A stretch of 7,998 nucleotides of DNA from Octopus sinensis. Lineage: Eukaryota. Shown here piece after piece: positions 1 through 7,998 of the stretch; the first letter of the stretch is position 1, and each line of letters opens with the position of its first letter. The notes below the pieces were generated by a model that ran no database searches, was not told the origin of the DNA, and saw nothing but the letters and a program-made list of their open reading frames with translations. The stretch is from assembly GCF_006345805.1 (NCBI RefSeq), contig NW_021828583.1, positions 1 through 7,998 of the forward strand, given 5' to 3'. The translations under genes were made by a program, and so were the position numbers.

Positions 1-243
1 AAACACACCAGCAACGGTTGTCAAGCAATGCTGGGGGGACAAACACAGACACACAAAACAATACACACACATATATATATACATATATACGACAGGCTTC
101 TTTCAGTTTCCGTCTACCAAATTCACTCACAAGGCATTGGTCGGCCCAGGGCTATAGTAGAAGACACTTGCCCAAGGTGCCACGCAGTGGGACTGAACCC
201 GGAACCATGTGGTTCGTAAGCAAGCTACTTACCACACGGCCAC
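1..243 (-). mobile_element. tRNA-derived SINE, family 1, copy A (3' part runs off the window)
   Basis: The reverse complement gives a tRNA-like head (GTGGCCGTGTGGTAAGTAGCTTGC...GGTTCCGGGTTCAGTCCC, with A-box/B-box-like motifs), then CCTTGGGCAAGTGTCTTCTACT and an internal TA/TG microsatellite. It is colinear with the copy at ~3004-3266. Confidence 0.85.
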
Positions 244-453
244 TTAGCAAGCTACTTACCACATTTCCCCAGTATAGATGAATAATAAACACTTAAACAA
301 CAGAATATTTTGAAATAATGGACTATAAGTGATTATCCAGTAAAATTTGAATTGAGGACTGTTTGTGTCTAACTTAACGAAAAACTCTATATGATACAAC
401 GCAGAGTGGATAAACAAAAGACAAAATATTTAAATCGAAGGATATTAAAATGA

Positions 454-1464: not shown

Positions 1465-2267
1465 CTTTGTTAGGTACGTATATAATTACTGGTTCGGGTA
1501 GAATATCGTCTGGTAGAGTTGTACCGTTGATGTCTTCGGCATATACATTTAAATGGATTTTGTCATCGTAGTTATAGCCCAAGCGTAAGAGGCTGTGGGT
1601 TATTTCGTGTTTGTAATAGCGATCGAAACCCCAGTCGTTCTCTTCACGGCTTCCGTACACCAATATGGAAGCCAGAATCATGGGGACACTCCTCTTCACA
1701 TTGTCCCTGGAGTTTTCATTCACTGCTACTTGGATCTTGGCAGACGTTTTGATTCCGCGCAGTAAGAACCCAATAAAAACACGGTCTTTTTTTTTCAGAT
1801 CCTCGATGCGAGTATAAAGATCAGGGATACCAATAGACATATCAGCCCCTAGATTAAGGGACTCGAACTCGTAATGTAAATTGCTCCGATAATCGTGCAA
1901 TTGATCGGGTGTCGAGTGTTCAAAGGTAATCAAATTAGTGTTGATAGGCGGACCGTCGGAGAACGGTTTCAAAAGACGGTGAAGGTCAGATTGTATACAG
2001 TGAGCCGCTGACGAGAGGCCCCGATAGACCTGCAAAGCTTGCCACGTTGCCCACAGACGATCCACTTGATTGCTATGCATCCAGAACAGTGGATCGAACG
2101 ACATGTGGTCCAACGTTGGGAATTCCGGCTCCGAGAAAATGTTGTAGAAGCTGTTTTGTAGGACTTCCAGTTGGATTTCGAAATCGCAGAAGTCCTCCTG
2201 TTCGAAAGCGAGCAGTAACTGGGAAAAGAGGGACCCGTGTTTCTCGTCCCCAAGATTCTCGGTGATC
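1465..2267 (-). CDS. Hemocyanin-like exon: C-terminal part of FU-b-like unit (degenerate CuB site and beta-sandwich domain)
   Basis: Acceptor ttctttgcttcag|G at 2268/2267 (phase 2); donor AAAG|gtaggt at 1465/1464 (phase 1); 803 bp. Translation (W)ITENLGDEKHGSLFSQLLLAFEQEDFCDFEIQLEVLQNSFY...FDPLFWMHSNQVDRLWATWQALQ...RVFIGFLLRGIKTSA...WGFDRYYKHEIT...INGTTLP...YVPNK. The ORF track starts too late and runs into the intron. Confidence 0.92.
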
Positions 2268-2400
2268 CTGAAGCAAAGAAATATAAATCAGCCATCATCA
2301 AGGACAAAGCATTAAAATAAGGATCAGGTTTCAAACGTGAATTATTGAGAGGTTGAGGAGACAGAATGGTTCTGGAAATAGGGTGTCGCTCTCAGGATTG

Positions 2401-2443
2401 TATATGCAAGCAAATATATATATTATATATATAGTATATATAT

Positions 2444-2477
<34 letters not shown>
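2401..2477. repeat. (TA)n microsatellite
   Basis: Visible TA run inside the phase-2 intron. Confidence 0.9.
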
Positions 2478-2828
2478 CAACTAATGTAGGATAAAATTTT
2501 TCCGAAAAAAATTTTTATCAATGGCCAGCATATCAAAAAGTACCTTGAAAGGTTAAATTTATAAATAACTTATAAAATACGGGCAAAAGAAAAATTGTAA
2601 TACCAAATATGCCGAAAAAAGACAAATTGTCAATAACCATTATAATTTATGCGTCTCGAAACAAGCCGATAGAAATTTCTAAAAAATTCCATTATTACCG
2701 TATTGGTCCCAATTTCAGAGTTAATTCATAAGAATTTTCTCCTCCTCAGCGATAAATACGTAAGACATAAATGAAATACTTACTCATACCCATGGAAAAA
2801 GCAAGCACTAAGTCCTGAGTACCAAGTC

Positions 2829-2898
2829 CGATGTTAGGGGGACAAACACAGACAAACAAACACATACACACATATATATACATATACATATATACGAC
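2829..2898 (-). mobile_element. Internal fragment of SINE family 1 fused to the 3' end of copy B
   Basis: CGATGTTAGGGGGACAAACACAGAC...TATACGAC matches the central segment of copy A (~26-93) and of copy B (~3029-3115). Confidence 0.75.
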
Positions 2899-3266
2899 GA
2901 GCACCACCTTTGGTCGAGCAAATCGAACCCAGGACTTATTCTTTGTAAGCCTGGTACTTAGTCTATCGGTCTCTTTTGCCGAATCCCTAAGTTACGGGGA
3001 CGTAAACACACCAGCATCGGTTGTCAAGTGATGTTGAGGGAGACAAACACAAACACACAAACATATACACACACATATACACAAACATATACACATATAT
3101 ATATACATATATACAACTGGATTCTTTCAGTTTACCTCTACCAAATCCACTCACAAGGCTTTAGTCGGCCCGAGGCTACAGTAGAAGACACGTGCCCAAG
3201 ATGCCACGCAGTGGGACTGAACCCGGAACTATATGGTTGGTTAGCAAGCTACCTACCACACAGCCA
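2899..3266 (-). mobile_element. tRNA-derived SINE, family 1, copy B (near full length)
   Basis: Head TGGCTGTGTGGTAGGTAGCTTGC...GGGTTCAGTCCCACTGCGTGG on the minus strand. The body is colinear with copy A and continues to ...AATAAGTCCTGGGTTCGATTTGCTCGACCAAAGGTGGTGCTC. Confidence 0.85.
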
Positions 3267-3299
3267 TAAGATTATCTTTACAGATCTATATAAATTATA

Positions 3300-3685
3300 G
3301 TGGAGGCGCAATGGCCCAGTGGTTAGGACAGCGGACTCGCAGTCGTAGGATCGCGGTTTCGATTCCCAGACCGGGCGTTGTGAGTGTTTATTGAGCGAAA
3401 ACACCTAAAAGCTCTACGAAGCTCCGGCAGGGATGGTGGTGATCCCTGCTGTACTCTTTCACCACAACTTTCTCTCACCCTTACTTCCTGTTTCTGTTGT
3501 ACCTGTATTTCAAAGGGCCGGCTTGTCACTCTCTGTGACACGCTGAATATCCCTGAGAACTACGTTAAGGGTACACGTGTCTGTGGAGTGCTCAGCCACT
3601 TACACGTTAATTTCACGAGCTGGCTGTTCCGTTGATCGGATCAACCGGAACCCTCGTCGTCGTAACCGACGGAGTGCTTCCAAAA
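3300..3685 (+). mobile_element. tRNA-derived SINE, family 2, full-length copy C with 12-bp target-site duplication
   Basis: tRNA-like head GGAGGCGCAATGGCCCAGTGGTTAGG...GGTTTCGATTCCC. It is flanked by the exact direct repeat ATATAAATTATA at 3288-3299 and 3686-3697, and is highly similar to 7751-7998. Confidence 0.9.
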
Positions 3686-3793
3686 ATATAAATTATATCC
3701 TGCAAAAATCTATGCTGATTATAATTTCTATAAAAAAATCTTTAGTGATAACATTTATTAACAAGGGAAAGCTACAACGGATTCAAGACTTAC

Positions 3794-4277
3794 CATTCTG
3801 TATTTCTCGGAGCCTCTTCATTATAGGACATGAAATCAACCGAGAGACGGGAAAACGGGTTCAATCTAAACTGCATCCAGTCTGGATCATAAAAGGAGTG
3901 GTTCGATAAGAACAACGGTATGGTATTCACAGGATCAGTCCAGTCCCAGTACGGTAAGGCAACACTGGTTCCGCACTCACCCAGTGAATTCTCAAATTGT
4001 TTCACAGCTAATCGATTCCAGTGCAAGAACACCGGGTTTCCATGGACGCGGCAAACCCGTTGATGGGTCGATTCCGGTTGGGGACATTTCTTCAACAGTC
4101 CAGAATACTCTGCTAGAATTTGGTAACCTTGCATGGATTTGTCCTTGGCGAAACACACCATGGCTAGTCTTAGTTCGAGCTGTTCTATTTTAGTTAAATC
4201 ATTGACGTTTTTCCGCTTGATGGATGCTTTGTGCAGTTTCTTGTGGAATTTTCTCTGCAGTTTCTTCAATTTCCTCT
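3794..4277 (-). CDS. Hemocyanin-like exon: basic linker plus N-terminal part of FU-b-like unit (degenerate CuA site)
   Basis: Acceptor aatttttaatgttacag|AG at 4278/4277 (phase 1); donor GAATG|gtaagt at 3794/3793 (phase 2); 484 bp. Translation ...IKRKNVNDLTKIEQLELRLAM...GYQILAEYSGLLKKCPQP...VCRVHGNPVFLHWNRLAVKQFENSL...ALPYWDWT...NPF. Confidence 0.92.
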
Positions 4278-4320
4278 CTGTAACATTAAAAATTTAAGAA
4301 AGAATATATAATTTTATACA

Positions 4321-4358
4321 CGCCCCAGCATGGCCACAGCTCAAGAGCTGAAACTGGA
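4321..4358 (+). mobile_element. Possible isolated 3' tail fragment of SINE family 1
   Basis: CCCCAGCATGGCCACAGCTCAAGAGCTGAAAC resembles the tail I recall following GGTGCTC in this octopus SINE family. This rests on memory of the consensus and cannot be verified inside the window. Confidence 0.35.
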
Positions 4359-4377
4359 AACATAGGTATAAACATAA

Positions 4378-4411
4378 ACACACATACACATACGCATGTA
4401 TATACACACAA

Positions 4412-4453
<42 letters not shown>

Positions 4454-4457
4454 ATAC

Positions 4458-4490
<33 letters not shown>

Positions 4491-4638
4491 CATACATATA
4501 TATATATGTGCTTGTGTGTGTGTGTGAGTGAGTGTGTGTTCATACATATATATATGTGTGTGTGTGTGTGTGTGAGTGAGTGTTCATACATATATATATG
4601 TGTTTGTGTGCGTGCGTGTGAGTGAGTGTGTGTGTGTA
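4378..4638. repeat. Compound (TG)n/(TA)n/(TGAG)n microsatellite array
   Basis: Repeated units of CATACATATATATATG(TG)n with TGAG variants. Confidence 0.92.
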
Positions 4639-4650
4639 TCTAATTATGTA

Positions 4651-4738
4651 TGCCGAACCGCTAAGTTATGGGGATGTAAACACCCCGACACCGGTTGTCA
4701 AGTCGTGATGGGAAGCAAACATACACATCACGCTTATA
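4651..4738 (-). mobile_element. Diverged internal fragment of SINE family 1, interrupted by the Helitron
   Basis: TGCCGAACCGCTAAGTTATGGGGATGTAAACACC...CGGTTGTCAAG aligns with copy B 2977-3028. Confidence 0.75.
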
Positions 4739-5041
4739 TCTATATATATAAAACTCTAGTTGTGTGAGTGTCTGTCCCCTTCGATTTAGATTCCTAACTA
4801 CTCCCACATTTTGCGGTGCAGTTTAACCAAATTCGGGTATCTTATAGTCGTGATTCATATCGAGCCCTTCTGGGTATTAGCGCGCGTCTACGATGAGTCT
4901 ACGATTTAAAAAAAAATTTACCATCATTTTTTCCATTTTAATGCATTTTTTTTCGCTATTATATAAGGGAAGTAACTCTCTAAAAATGTCTACGATGAGT
5001 CAACGATTTAAAAAAAATTTACCAAATTTACCATTATTTAC

Positions 5042-5085
<44 letters not shown>

Positions 5086-5381
5086 GAGAGAGAGAGAGAG
5101 AGAGGATAGGAGAGAGGAGAGAGATTTTGTTTTTGTCTGTGTGTATGTGTGTGTTCGTATATGCTTCGGTGTTAGTGTCATTGTTTGTATTTGTGTGTGT
5201 GTGTGTGTGTATGTATGCATGTATGTATATACGCCTGGACGCACTTACACATTCAAACACATAATCACACTCTTTTCCATTTTTAATGCATTTTTTTGCT
5301 ATTTTTTGGCTATAACTCTCTAAAAATGCTTATATAGTTATTTCCCTTACAAACCCGAGCAACGCCGGGCGATACTGCTAG
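4739..5381 (+). mobile_element. Non-autonomous Helitron (643 bp, both termini intact)
   Basis: 5' TC (TCTATATATATAAAAC) follows host A4738 and 3' CTAG (5378-5381) precedes host T5382, with no TSD. Subterminal hairpin CCCGaGC-AAC-GCcCGGG (5354-5369) ends 8 nt before CTAG. Internal direct repeats at 4886/4988 and 4928/5273. Confidence 0.85.
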
Positions 5382-5534
5382 TATATGTATAGGTCAGTTG
5401 GTTCTGGTTTAAAGGAAGTTTGGCTGCTATTTCTATCTGATGAGACGACTAAGTAGATGCCGATGGCCCTTGGCTACATATACACACGCTCTTTCGGGGT
5501 CGATAAATAAAGTACAACTGAGGCCAGCTTTATG

Positions 5535-5970
5535 TCTCTTCTTTCTCTCTCTCTCTCTCTCTCTCCTTTCCTCTTTCTTTCTCCCTTTCTCTCTCTCACT
5601 CTCTCCTTTCCTCTTTCTTTCTCTCTCTCTCCTTTCTCTCTCTCCTTTTCTCTTTCTTTCTCTCTTTCTCTCTCTCCTTCTCTCTTTCTCTCCTCTCTCC
5701 TTTCCTCTTTCTCTTTCTCTCTCCTCTTCGTTCTCCCTCTCCTTCTTTCCCCGTTCCTCCCTCTCTCCTATTCTTCCTCCCCCCCCTCCCTTCCTCTTCT
5801 TTCTTTCTCTCTTTTCTCTCTCTCTCCCTCTCTCTTTCTCTCTCTCTCTCCTTTCCTCTTTCTTTCTCTTTCTCTCTCTCTCCCTCTCTCTTTCTCTCTC
5901 TCCTTCCCTCTTTCTTTCTCTCTTTCTCTCTCTCTCTCTCCCTCTCTCTTTCTCTCTCTTTCTTTCTCCC
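5535..5970. repeat. Long CT-rich homopyrimidine/homopurine low-complexity tract
   Basis: About 435 bp of almost only C and T on the + strand; source of the SLSL and ERER pseudo-ORFs. Confidence 0.95.
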
Positions 5971-6326
5971 AGAGAGAGAGAGGATCTGCTAAGTTTAGTT
6001 GTCTACAAAAACAAAAATAAGCTAAAATAAAAACACCGTAGATTACGACAAAGTCTCTGCGACCCAATCGTGAGTTAAGGACCCAAGGCACATGCATAAG
6101 ACAGCATGGCCTTGTTGAGCGAGATTTGACTGCTGTTTTTACCAAATCTAATGGTCACGAAGAGTCTTCTTCGCGTAATCATTTAATACAGGCTTTATTC
6201 TCGACAGGCTGCTATCTCTAACAAGTCAGATGACCACGAAGAAAAGAAAAACCTTCTGCTGTTCTTTGTTGTTGTCCCTTGGAGATGGGTGTGGGATCGA
6301 AACCGTGAACAGCGTTCACTACTTAC

Positions 6327-7445
6327 CGTTTGTGTGTCTTCGGCCTGGAATATAGGACACTGTGGGTGGCGGTATGATGTCATCTTTGAGCTGTGTGCCA
6401 TTCAGGGCAGATATATCTGCACGGACGTAGTAGTCGCCATCTAGCGGGACACCGAGCGATTTGACCACATCGGTGATTTCGAAGAGGTACGGATAGCCGT
6501 AGTCCCACTTCTGTTGGTGGATGTCATCTCCTCCCAGAACGAAGAACGAACCTGCATCGTTGCTACAGTCGTCTGCCAGCACATGCGCGGTGTCACTTTC
6601 GGGCGACACACAAACCAAGACCCGGAATTTGGCCGACGCTTTGATTGCACGTAGTTGAAAGCTGGCGAAAGATCTGGGTTTCGATCGGCGCTCTTGGAGA
6701 AGCTGACTAATTCTTGAGATATTCATGCCATTGAGACTTAGATCATCATAATGATAACCTAATGAAACAGCAGGATTTACTAATTGCATGGGTTCGGCGT
6801 TTATCCTGCTGAGGTTGACACGATCGCTGTACACACGATCGAAAGGTCCCAACGGCTTTTGGAGCAAGTTCAAAGCACAGTTAATGGCCGCTCTCCTTCC
6901 TCTGTAGTCTTGAAGTTGCTGCCACAAGGCGAACATGCGATCAGTGTTCACCGTGTAGTGACATATGGCCATGTCGTCTAATCGATATGGAGTGATGCCG
7001 GTGTGAAAAAAAGATTGTATGAGGGCCATTTCAAGCATAATAGCAAAACGGCAATAATCGACTTGCTCCAGAGCCAACAGAGCGCCCTCTAGCAGAAAGT
7101 ATTTTGTGTGATAATGACTGATAAACGTCATCTTGTTCATGGGGATCTTGATGCTCGTCCAGTCGTAATAAAAAAGACCAGTAAAGCCTTCGTAAGAAGC
7201 CAGCGCTTGTTCTAATTGTGCAAGGTACAATCTGTTCCAGAGAAGATAAGTTGCCTTGCCATGTGTTGCGCAGTATGAACGGGTTCCATCCGATCGCTTC
7301 GTACAGCTACTTTGATTATCGTGGAAAGCTGAGAAGTTTGCGTATCCAGTGGCGCGTTCGTCGTTCAAAAAGAGGTTTACTGCGGAATATAGGTTGTGCG
7401 TTTCTGTTTGCGTGAGAGCAGATACGTTCTTGCGTATAAAAACAC
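6327..7445 (-). CDS. Hemocyanin-like exon encoding an entire, degenerate FU-a-like unit
   Basis: Acceptor ttctttttctttcttctctttccag|GT at 7446/7445; donor AACG|gtaagt at 6327/6326; 1119 bp, phase 1 at both ends. Translation VFIRKNVSALTQTETHNLYSAV...GYANFSAFHD...YCATHG...LWNRLYLAQLEQAL...YYDWT...ALEQVDYC...DRMFALWQQLQ...AGSFFVLGG...LGVPLDGDYYV...NGT...PPPTVSYIPG. The FU-a assignment rests on my recollection of FU-a C-terminal motifs (VCV...C..AG, LGVPLxGxYYV). Confidence 0.9.
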
Positions 7446-7646
7446 CTGGAAAGAGAAGAAAGAAAAAGAATAATTAATAACGGTGAAAGAAATTGGAAGA
7501 AATGTTGGGACACTTATGAATATGCTCTACCTAAGACTGAGGAGAATACAGCAATGTGTCCCTTAACAATTTGCCCCCTATCAATTTCTCTCTATATATG
7601 CTAAAGCTTCCTCTTTGAGCCACGAAGTATTTAATGCTCCAGATTG

Positions 7647-7748
7647 GTGGAGGCGCAATGGCAGCGGACTCGCGGTCGGAGGATTGCGGTTTCGATTCCC
7701 AGACCGGGCATTGTATGTGTTTATTGAGCGAAAACACCTAAAGCTCCA
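7647..7748 (+). mobile_element. SINE family 2 head-only copy (D1) with a 14-bp deletion in the A-box region
   Basis: GGAGGCGCAATG/GCAGCGG lacks GCCCAGTGGTTAGG relative to copies C and D2, and ends at AAAGCTCCA immediately before D2. Confidence 0.8.
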
Positions 7749-7750
7749 TA

Positions 7751-7998
7751 GGAGGTGCAATGGCCCAGTGGTTAGGGCAGCGGACTCGCGGTCATAGGAT
7801 CGCGGTTTCGATTCCCAGACCGGGCGTTGTGAGTGTTTATTGAGCGAAAACATCTAAAGCTCCACGAGGCTCCGCCAGGGGATGGTGGTGATCCCTGCTG
7901 TACTCTTTCACCGCAACTTTCTCTCACTCTTACTTCCTGTTTCTGTTGTACCTGTATTTCAAGGGGCCGGCCTTGTCACTCTCTGTGACACGCTGAAT
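7751..7998 (+). mobile_element. SINE family 2 copy D2 (runs off the window)
   Basis: Near-identical and colinear with 3302-3548. Confidence 0.9.

Follow-up and report, generated by a model that had tools for sequence, protein, structure and literature searches.

A three-unit octopod protein, probably derived from hemocyanin, whose first two units have lost their copper sites

What becomes of a hemocyanin gene when most of its copper ligands have been replaced and its reading frame has nevertheless stayed open? The question is raised by an unplaced contig of Octopus sinensis (NW_021828583.1, NCBI RefSeq assembly GCF_006345805.1), the whole of which (7998 bp) was analysed and is referred to here as the window; its minus strand encodes two hemocyanin-like functional units (FUs), one resembling FU-a and the other FU-b. 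Arthropods offer familiar examples of non-respiratory proteins that derive from hemocyanin, but to our knowledge such proteins have been described in molluscs only for planorbid snails, which switched to hemoglobin. The original prediction for this locus, made from its letters only, was of a maintained non-respiratory hemocyanin-fold protein without working copper sites, a molluscan counterpart of the arthropod cryptocyanins and possibly new among cephalopods. On the evidence set out below we put at roughly 0.8 the probability that the window encodes units 1 and 2 of a conserved three-unit octopod protein, descended from the first three units (a, b and c) of a cephalopod hemocyanin gene, in which the FU-a-like and FU-b-like units are dead and the copper site of the third unit, FU-c, is complete. 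Such a protein is probably a maintained non-respiratory hemocyanin derivative and not a copper-free one.

Calling exons from the six-frame translation and by inspection of their boundaries, we found three on the minus strand (1119, 484 and 803 nt; Table 1), which together give 2406 nt, or 801 codons, with no stop. Upstream of each exon stand a polypyrimidine tract and AG, and a GTAAGT or GTAGGT donor comes directly after it; the first exon is entered in phase 1 and the three are left in phases 1, 2 and 1, with split codons G/AG across 6327/4277 (phase 1) and TG/G across 3794/2267 (phase 2). The three exons, matching phases and open frame that had been proposed for this stretch were thereby confirmed. 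The linker introns are in phase 1, as in the molluscan hemocyanin superfamily (at 7445, 6327/4277 and 1465), and the last exon leaves the window in phase 1 toward an FU-c exon that lies beyond it; from the exon map of an orthologue, the window covers exons 2–4 of a gene of about six. An exact-sequence look-up showed the spliced product to be RefSeq XP_036354573.1, apart from one additional residue at the end of that model, and the record is named 'hemocyanin G-type, units Oda to Odg-like, partial [Octopus sinensis]'. Examples of peptides unique to the product are ILAEYSGLLK and LEVLQNSFYNIFSEPEFPTLDHMSFDPLFWMHSNQVDR.

Pfam gave both Tyrosinase (PF00264) and Haemocyan_bet_s (PF14830) in each of the two units, i.e., a tyrosinase-like alpha domain and, after it, a hemocyanin beta-sandwich, the arrangement characteristic of the superfamily, with the Tyrosinase match in the FU-a-like unit covering residues 33–98 only. 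The best solved relatives were squid and gastropod hemocyanins, the match being collinear over FU-a and FU-b. We cut 92 FUs from 16 proteins (octopod Type A/G and Type R hemocyanins; those of Argonauta, Euprymna, Todarodes, Nautilus, Aplysia, Physella and Nucula; KLH1; snail Hcl-1 proteins; and the Octopus paralogues), aligned them, and built a neighbour-joining tree with 200 bootstraps. Unit 1 fell in the FU-a clade (bootstrap 100), within the cephalopods (94) and the coleoids (90), and unit 2 in the FU-b clade (97.5) with cephalopod FU-b. Unit 3, taken from the full-length orthologues described below, fell in the FU-c clade (98), where it branched outside cephalopod FU-c; it lacks the FU-h extension, and among squid hemocyanin units it matched FU-c best (295.7 bits, against at most 239 for any other). 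The internal intron of the FU-b-like unit matches that of FU-b in canonical O. sinensis hemocyanin in phase and, to within one residue, in position; this shows only that the gene comes from a hemocyanin ancestor in which the intron was already present. Dating of the duplication from neighbour-joining trees was tried and given up: the long branches of the octopod hemocyanin-like proteins sit at the base of coleoid FU-a, of cephalopod FU-b and of FU-c as a whole, and their attachment points are unreliable because the branches are so long; the duplication is taken only to predate the divergence of Octopus and Argonauta.

Nine columns of this alignment make up the copper site: His-1, then the two Cys (disulfide and thioether), His-2 to His-5 and lastly the HH pair. 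They read H/C/C/H/H/H/H/H/H in the FUs of all but one of the 11 full hemocyanins, and because this pattern is so constant the replacements in the two window units go far beyond chance. The FU-b-like unit reads S, C, R, H, N, Q, Y, H, S: a single ligand of six is kept and the thioether Cys is lost, the His that survives in MHSN being the first, non-ligand member of the HH pair. The ligand spacings of 19/9/100/4/27 agree with the numbering that we take to hold for Octopus FU-g (His2543, 2562, 2571, 2671, 2675 and 2702), and the second His of the pair is therefore the ligand. In the FU-a-like unit two ligands, both at the copper A (CuA) site, stand, and the thioether Cys is again gone; the copper B (CuB) region is degenerate, and compared with canonical FU-a the unit has lost 46 residues after YYDW and about 8–10 more before the HH motif. 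One alignment puts His147 (QSFFH) of this unit in register with CuB His-5, making the number of ligands kept two of six, or perhaps three, according to the alignment used. Neither unit, then, has the six His and thioether Cys of a respiratory hemocyanin unit.

All six codons cited in the original prediction read as given; its estimate of about one ligand in six for the FU-b-like unit was reproduced by the 92-FU alignment, and FHD and ATHG kept with WHR changed to WNR in the FU-a-like unit agreed with our codon reading. Its figure of about two in six for the latter stands, with three possible, but it had missed the loss of the thioether Cys; that no His lies in register at CuB is right in so far as HxxxH and HH are both gone, and otherwise depends on the alignment, given the fit of His147 in one of them. 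The accompanying argument, that A-to-I editing could not rescue the sites as His codons contain no G, is logically sound.

A further change concerns the beta-domain plug at the entrance of the active site, which we take to be Leu2830 in Octopus FU-g, the L of ILGG. This position is Leu in 87 of 99 units, Tyr in every FU-b-like unit including that of Argonauta (in the window its codon lies in ...ASILVYGSREEN..., exon 2267–1465), and Phe in the FU-c of three Octopus-like species. With its His ligands replaced by S, N, Q, Y and S and its plug changed from Leu to a Tyr that Argonauta shares, the pocket of the FU-b-like unit seems to have been re-packed. The sole exception among the 11 full hemocyanins at the site columns was FU-f of the Argonauta hians hemocyanin GAB1607025.1 (residues 1800–2226), which has CSRIG, HNNMN and ILLS at the ligand motifs and has lost three to four copper ligands and the thioether Cys. 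The protein model, of the seven-unit type, also lacks the greater part of FU-e, so either a respiratory hemocyanin includes a degenerate unit here or the gene model is at fault.

The remainder of the protein is seen in its orthologues. The 90% cluster of XP_036354573.1 includes the full-length proteins CAI9743244.1 of O. vulgaris (1271 aa) and XP_052833582.1 of O. bimaculoides (1272 aa). In place of the seven units of a cephalopod or the eight of a gastropod respiratory hemocyanin subunit, these proteins of about 1270 aa consist of a probable signal peptide, the FU-a-like unit, the FU-b-like unit, FU-c and a 19-residue tail containing Cys. The O. vulgaris gene has a small 5' exon for the hydrophobic N-terminus, one exon for the FU-a-like unit, two for the FU-b-like unit, a single FU-c exon and a last exon of 19 codons, of which the first, the FU-c and the last exons fall outside the window; the O. 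vulgaris locus (L001) is 97.3–99.4% identical to the window in exons and about 86–97% in the aligned stretches of intron. That the FU-c exon is part of another gene was rejected in view of its compatible phases and the collinear order in three genomes; against a separate FU-c gene there is also the agreement of two annotation pipelines and an Argonauta model that joins the FU-b-like unit to the ...ENSKW linker.

In FU-c all nine site positions are canonical and all six ligands are present, and this holds in five octopod sequences, from O. vulgaris, O. bimaculoides, an octopod represented by sequencing runs SRR11869384/85/94 (85% identical) and Argonauta hians. This bears directly on whether the whole protein could be a copper-free storage, carrier or structural protein, the molluscan analogue of cryptocyanin or hexamerin. 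Neither window unit has a workable dicopper site, and snail Hcl-1 has been proposed to be hexamerin-like in egg-mass fluid (PMC5201427), but we consider such a protein unlikely here: the third unit keeps its six His and thioether Cys as far as Argonauta, FU-c is the slowest-evolving part of the protein, and a preserved site would be unexpected in a pure store of amino acids. A cryptocyanin or hexamerin has no copper site at all, and the complete FU-c site of the orthologues is at odds with this; the copper-free label of the original prediction accordingly does not extend to the whole protein.

The window product (802 residues) was modelled with AlphaFold2 from a 16-sequence alignment; the model had a mean predicted local distance difference test score (pLDDT) of 76 and a predicted template modelling (TM) score of 0.80, and both units fold in it; confidence was low at the deletion sites of the FU-a-like unit, the Cys loop and the linker, with pLDDT below 50 at residues 99–114 and 149–159. 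Foldseek matched both units together to squid hemocyanin 4yd9_A (TM 0.84), and single units to the single-FU structures 1js8, 8tnv and 1lnl (target-normalised TM 0.90–0.92). The two units keep the two-domain hemocyanin fold but are unable to build a dicopper site. The mutual arrangement of the two units in the model, which is that of squid hemocyanin, together with the fact that FU-a, FU-b and FU-c are wall units, would also suit an accessory role, in which a short subunit joins canonical hemocyanin and tunes or caps the decamer. Variant subunits are known in snails, among them mega-hemocyanin (PMC2881123) and an additional hemocyanin polypeptide of Muricidae (PMC7884596). We think such a role quite improbable in view of the 46 and 8 residues missing from the FU-a-like unit, the identity of only about 33–47% to canonical FU-a and FU-b, and the fact that in O. 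vulgaris this gene and those for hemocyanin are on different chromosomes. Our preferred reading remains a separate three-unit protein with a single complete site.

Maintenance of the gene was assessed by the ratio of non-synonymous to synonymous substitution rates (dN/dS, Nei-Gojobori method), with P values against neutrality. Over all window exons the comparison with O. vulgaris gave dN/dS 0.25 (dS 0.034, P = 1.5e-4), from 33 differences of which 17 were synonymous and 16 non-synonymous; for the FU-b-like unit it was 0.13. Against O. bimaculoides, the ratio was 0.258 for the FU-a-like unit (dS ~0.2, P = 2e-8) and 0.259 for the FU-b-like unit (P = 1e-9), and FU-c compared between O. vulgaris and O. 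bimaculoides gave 0.20 (P = 2e-13). For canonical FU-g, between O. sinensis and O. bimaculoides, it was 0.20 over 291 codons, with half the dN. Judged from these codon comparisons, both dead units are under purifying selection about as strong as that in respiratory hemocyanin. Between the window and O. vulgaris there was no indel in 2406 exon bases, whereas the aligned stretches of intron, 0.7–1 kb long, had 7–36 gap openings apiece.

The same gene, in collinear order, is present in Argonauta hians (locus L003; BAAFZT010000055.1, 5265–13566), with homologous stretches of 662, 508 and 712 codons that contain no stop. Identity is 27% for the FU-a-like unit, 42–56% for the FU-b-like unit and 62% for FU-c; the intron of the FU-b-like unit is at the same site, after ...HHEW, its motifs are EYSG, CSIHG, WNR, QNSFY and LHSS, and FU-c is intact. 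Very large insertions of low-complexity sequence (poly-His/Gln, poly-Ser, poly-Glu and poly-Thr/Asn) interrupt all three units without shifting the frame. As the replacements in the FU-b-like unit are the same in both genera, the ligand losses are older than the Octopus-Argonauta split, and both dead units have been retained ever since. In the public annotation of Argonauta the gene appears as separate pieces of 138 and 299 aa. A scan of representatives at 50% and a profile search with FU-c returned octopod relatives only, but the profile search also missed known members, so that the absence of orthologues from beyond Octopoda counts for little.

These comparisons decide the case of a decaying or recently dead partial duplicate, a pseudogene that is still open by chance. 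Its reduction to three of seven units, the lost ligands, the deletions in the FU-a-like unit, the very long branches in the FU tree and a ratio in that unit that does not differ significantly from neutrality in the closest pair are all what such a relic would show. Set against this are dN/dS of about 0.26 in each unit relative to O. bimaculoides (P ≤ 2e-7), exons without indels or stops in three Octopus species and likewise in the homologous Argonauta segments, retained splice sites and phases, and identical replacements fixed since the Argonauta split; we regard a pseudogene as very improbable, and this explanation is rejected. The original prediction had proposed both a dN/dS comparison, in which a value near 1 would have spoken for a pseudogene, and a search for orthologues with the same losses, and both came out in its favour: the ratio in each dead unit is far from 1, Octopus orthologues were found, and the Argonauta orthologue has matching replacements in its FU-b-like unit. 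Its description of a maintained non-respiratory hemocyanin-fold protein thus holds for the two units in the window and fails only as a description of a protein free of copper throughout.

The nearest described system is Hcl-1 of the snail Biomphalaria glabrata, which was also the next-best database match after the Octopus orthologues. Each of its three units (a-b-h) lacks one His. The protein comes from the albumen gland and ends up in the fluid of the egg mass, the authors who described it have discussed a hexamerin-like or phenoloxidase role, and homologues exist in Bulinus (Pena and Adema 2016, PMC5201427; see also PMC7931591). With the octopod protein it shares the format of a secreted, truncated hemocyanin derivative of three FUs, phase-1 linker introns, missing canonical His residues and a presumed non-respiratory role. 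Among molluscs, a protein of the predicted type has a precedent in Hcl-1 and Hcl-2 (PMC5201427). Hcl-1 and the octopod protein differ, however, in composition (a-b-h, with units that group with gastropod FUs, versus a-b-c), in exon number (23 versus about six), and in the animals themselves, as octopods still respire via hemocyanin and the planorbid snails do not. In our alignment, Hcl-1 had lost one to two His per unit and the thioether Cys in all three, so that its losses affect every unit, whereas in the octopod protein two units have each lost four to five His and the third has lost none. The octopod protein shares neither common descent with Hcl-1 nor its a-b-h composition, and from the clustering of the Hcl-1 units with gastropod units we conclude that the three-unit proteins of snails and octopods arose independently.

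Compared with the respiratory octopod hemocyanins (Type A/G and Type R; OdH of Enteroctopus dofleini; XP_029636170.2 of O. sinensis), the protein has the same FU fold, a-b-c order, phase-1 linker introns, position and phase of the FU-b intron, and complete dicopper site in FU-c; those hemocyanins differ in having seven units, each with six His, in lying on other chromosomes, and in being only about 43% identical to the window product. The octopod hemocyanin genes described are Type A and Type R only (PMC7931591), and our literature searches, including searches by accession number, found no paper describing the present gene, which appears only in automatic annotations that name it as a hemocyanin; they likewise turned up nothing on its production by a female accessory gland or its presence in egg fluid in octopods. 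The cryptocyanin, pseudohemocyanin and hexamerins of arthropods resemble it as derivatives of an oxygen carrier that are without copper sites and are retained for non-respiratory roles; however, these proteins are wholly copper-free and belong to the unrelated arthropod hemocyanin superfamily, and the octopod protein keeps one intact site. Pfam returned only Tyrosinase and Haemocyan_bet_s and no arthropod hemocyanin domain, so that the arthropod analogy drawn in the original prediction is apt as a functional likeness, the arthropod hemocyanins and hexamerins being a different protein family.

As to what the protein might do, it would be secreted, and with three units only it would be too short to form the wall of a respiratory decamer and would not act as a bulk oxygen carrier. 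Any activity would then pass through the single dicopper site of FU-c, as a phenoloxidase-like enzyme or a local binder of O2, and the FU-a-like and FU-b-like units may serve as scaffold, binding or regulatory modules. We offer only tentatively, and as something that may well prove wrong, the idea that pseudo-units with re-packed pockets serve one live dicopper unit as scaffold or regulatory modules in a new non-respiratory type-3 function, and that octopods and snails converged on a three-unit format. Several points weigh against the three-unit interpretation as a whole. The FU-a-like unit has a dN/dS of 0.57 against O. vulgaris (5 synonymous and 10 non-synonymous differences), which is not significant; the signal peptide is probable, as judged by eye; parts of the low-complexity insertions in Argonauta might be unannotated introns; and six conserved His residues in FU-c are no proof of copper loading. 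FU-c not being in the window, the three-unit architecture in O. sinensis is deduced from orthologues of 96–99% DNA identity, and expression from the agreement of two independent genome annotations on the small first and last exons.

Table 1. Features of the window on the minus strand, with the codon readings at the copper ligands of the two units.
Feature	Position	Strand	Remarks
Exon, whole FU-a-like unit (product residues 1–372)	6327–7445	-	AG acceptor, phase 1; GTAAGT donor
CuA His-1 of FU-a-like unit, kept (AFHD)	7318–7329	-	92-FU alignment and codon reading
CuA His-2 and disulfide Cys of FU-a-like unit, kept; thioether Cys to Ala (CATHG)	7258–7272	-	
CuA His-3 of FU-a-like unit to Asn (LWNR)	7231–7242	-	Codon 7234–7236, AAC
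Degenerate middle and CuB region of FU-a-like unit	6952–7170	-	No HxxxH, no HH; motifs YYDW (7170–7159), IQSFFH (7020–7003), ICHYT (6966–6952)
Linker intron between the two units, phase 1	4278–6326	-	Many (TG)n, (TC)n and interspersed repeats
Exon, basic linker (ERKLKKLQRKFHKKLHK...) and N-terminal part of FU-b-like unit	3794–4277	-	GTAAGT donor, phase 2
CuA His-1 of FU-b-like unit to Ser (EYSG)	4099–4110	-	Codon 4102–4104, TCT; same in Argonauta
CuA His-2 of FU-b-like unit, kept; thioether Cys to Arg (CRVHG)	4039–4053	-	
CuA His-3 of FU-b-like unit to Asn (HWNR)	4012–4023	-	Codon 4015–4017, AAT; same in Argonauta
Internal intron of FU-b-like unit, phase 2	2268–3793	-	Contains a copy of a SINE-like repeat of ~385 bp (3299–3684)
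Exon, C-terminal part of FU-b-like unit (CuB region and beta-sandwich)	1465–2267	-	GTAGGT donor, phase 1
CuB His-4 to Gln and His-5 to Tyr of FU-b-like unit (QNSFY)	2144–2158	-	Codons 2156–2158, CAA, and 2144–2146, TAC; same in Argonauta
Ligand (second) His of HH pair of FU-b-like unit to Ser (MHSNQ)	2066–2080	-	Codon 2072–2074, AGC

The non-coding parts of the window are rich in repeats. The repeat resembling a short interspersed nuclear element (SINE) occurs in two to three copies (3299–3684, 7635–7748 and 7751–7998), and at least four more lie in the O. vulgaris locus L001 (1503–1888, 15509–15891, 18475–18863 and 20536–20783; 94–96% identity); an ARAGORN tRNA scan and an Rfam scan of the window found nothing, this repeat included. 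Both species also carry several copies of a second interspersed repeat of about 200–240 bp, always adjoining a (CA/TA)n tract (43–242 and 3067–3266 in the window), and window positions 1–244, which hold one of these, match L001 at 14868–15108, 20819–21054 and 34458–34705. The linker intron contains microsatellite arrays, long (TCTC)n and compound (TG)n(TA)n ones, within 5535–5968 and 4414–4637, and it is mainly by indels that the orthologous O. vulgaris stretch differs from the window at these. In the intron downstream of the FU-b-like unit, a plus-strand open reading frame at 843–1037 reads ...NLIYVLTCSGCGHNYVAQTSLTLRRRVTLH...; we take it, as an unconfirmed impression, to resemble the GIY-YIG nuclease motif of Penelope-like retroelements, and Pfam gave no match for this frame. 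The search of representative sequences also returned a single-unit protein of 472 aa with a hydrophobic N-terminus resembling a signal peptide, FU-h-like in appearance, with a C-terminal extension and the altered motifs TCSIHG and FLHS, which suggests that some mollusc has further stand-alone derivatives of hemocyanin units.

Annotation names such as 'hemocyanin G-type-like' and 'hemocyanin subunit 1' thus appear to conceal a distinct gene family. If the three-unit interpretation is right, an animal that depends on hemocyanin keeps, apart from it, an old three-unit derivative in which two units are conserved without copper sites and one has a perfect site, and the three-unit format would have had a second, independent origin in octopods. 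The gene would then amount to a natural experiment on the use to which a hemocyanin unit is put once oxygen binding is gone. It also offers a defined target, a ~145-kDa protein for which a single dicopper site is predicted, as a candidate phenoloxidase-like, egg or immune protein of cephalopods.

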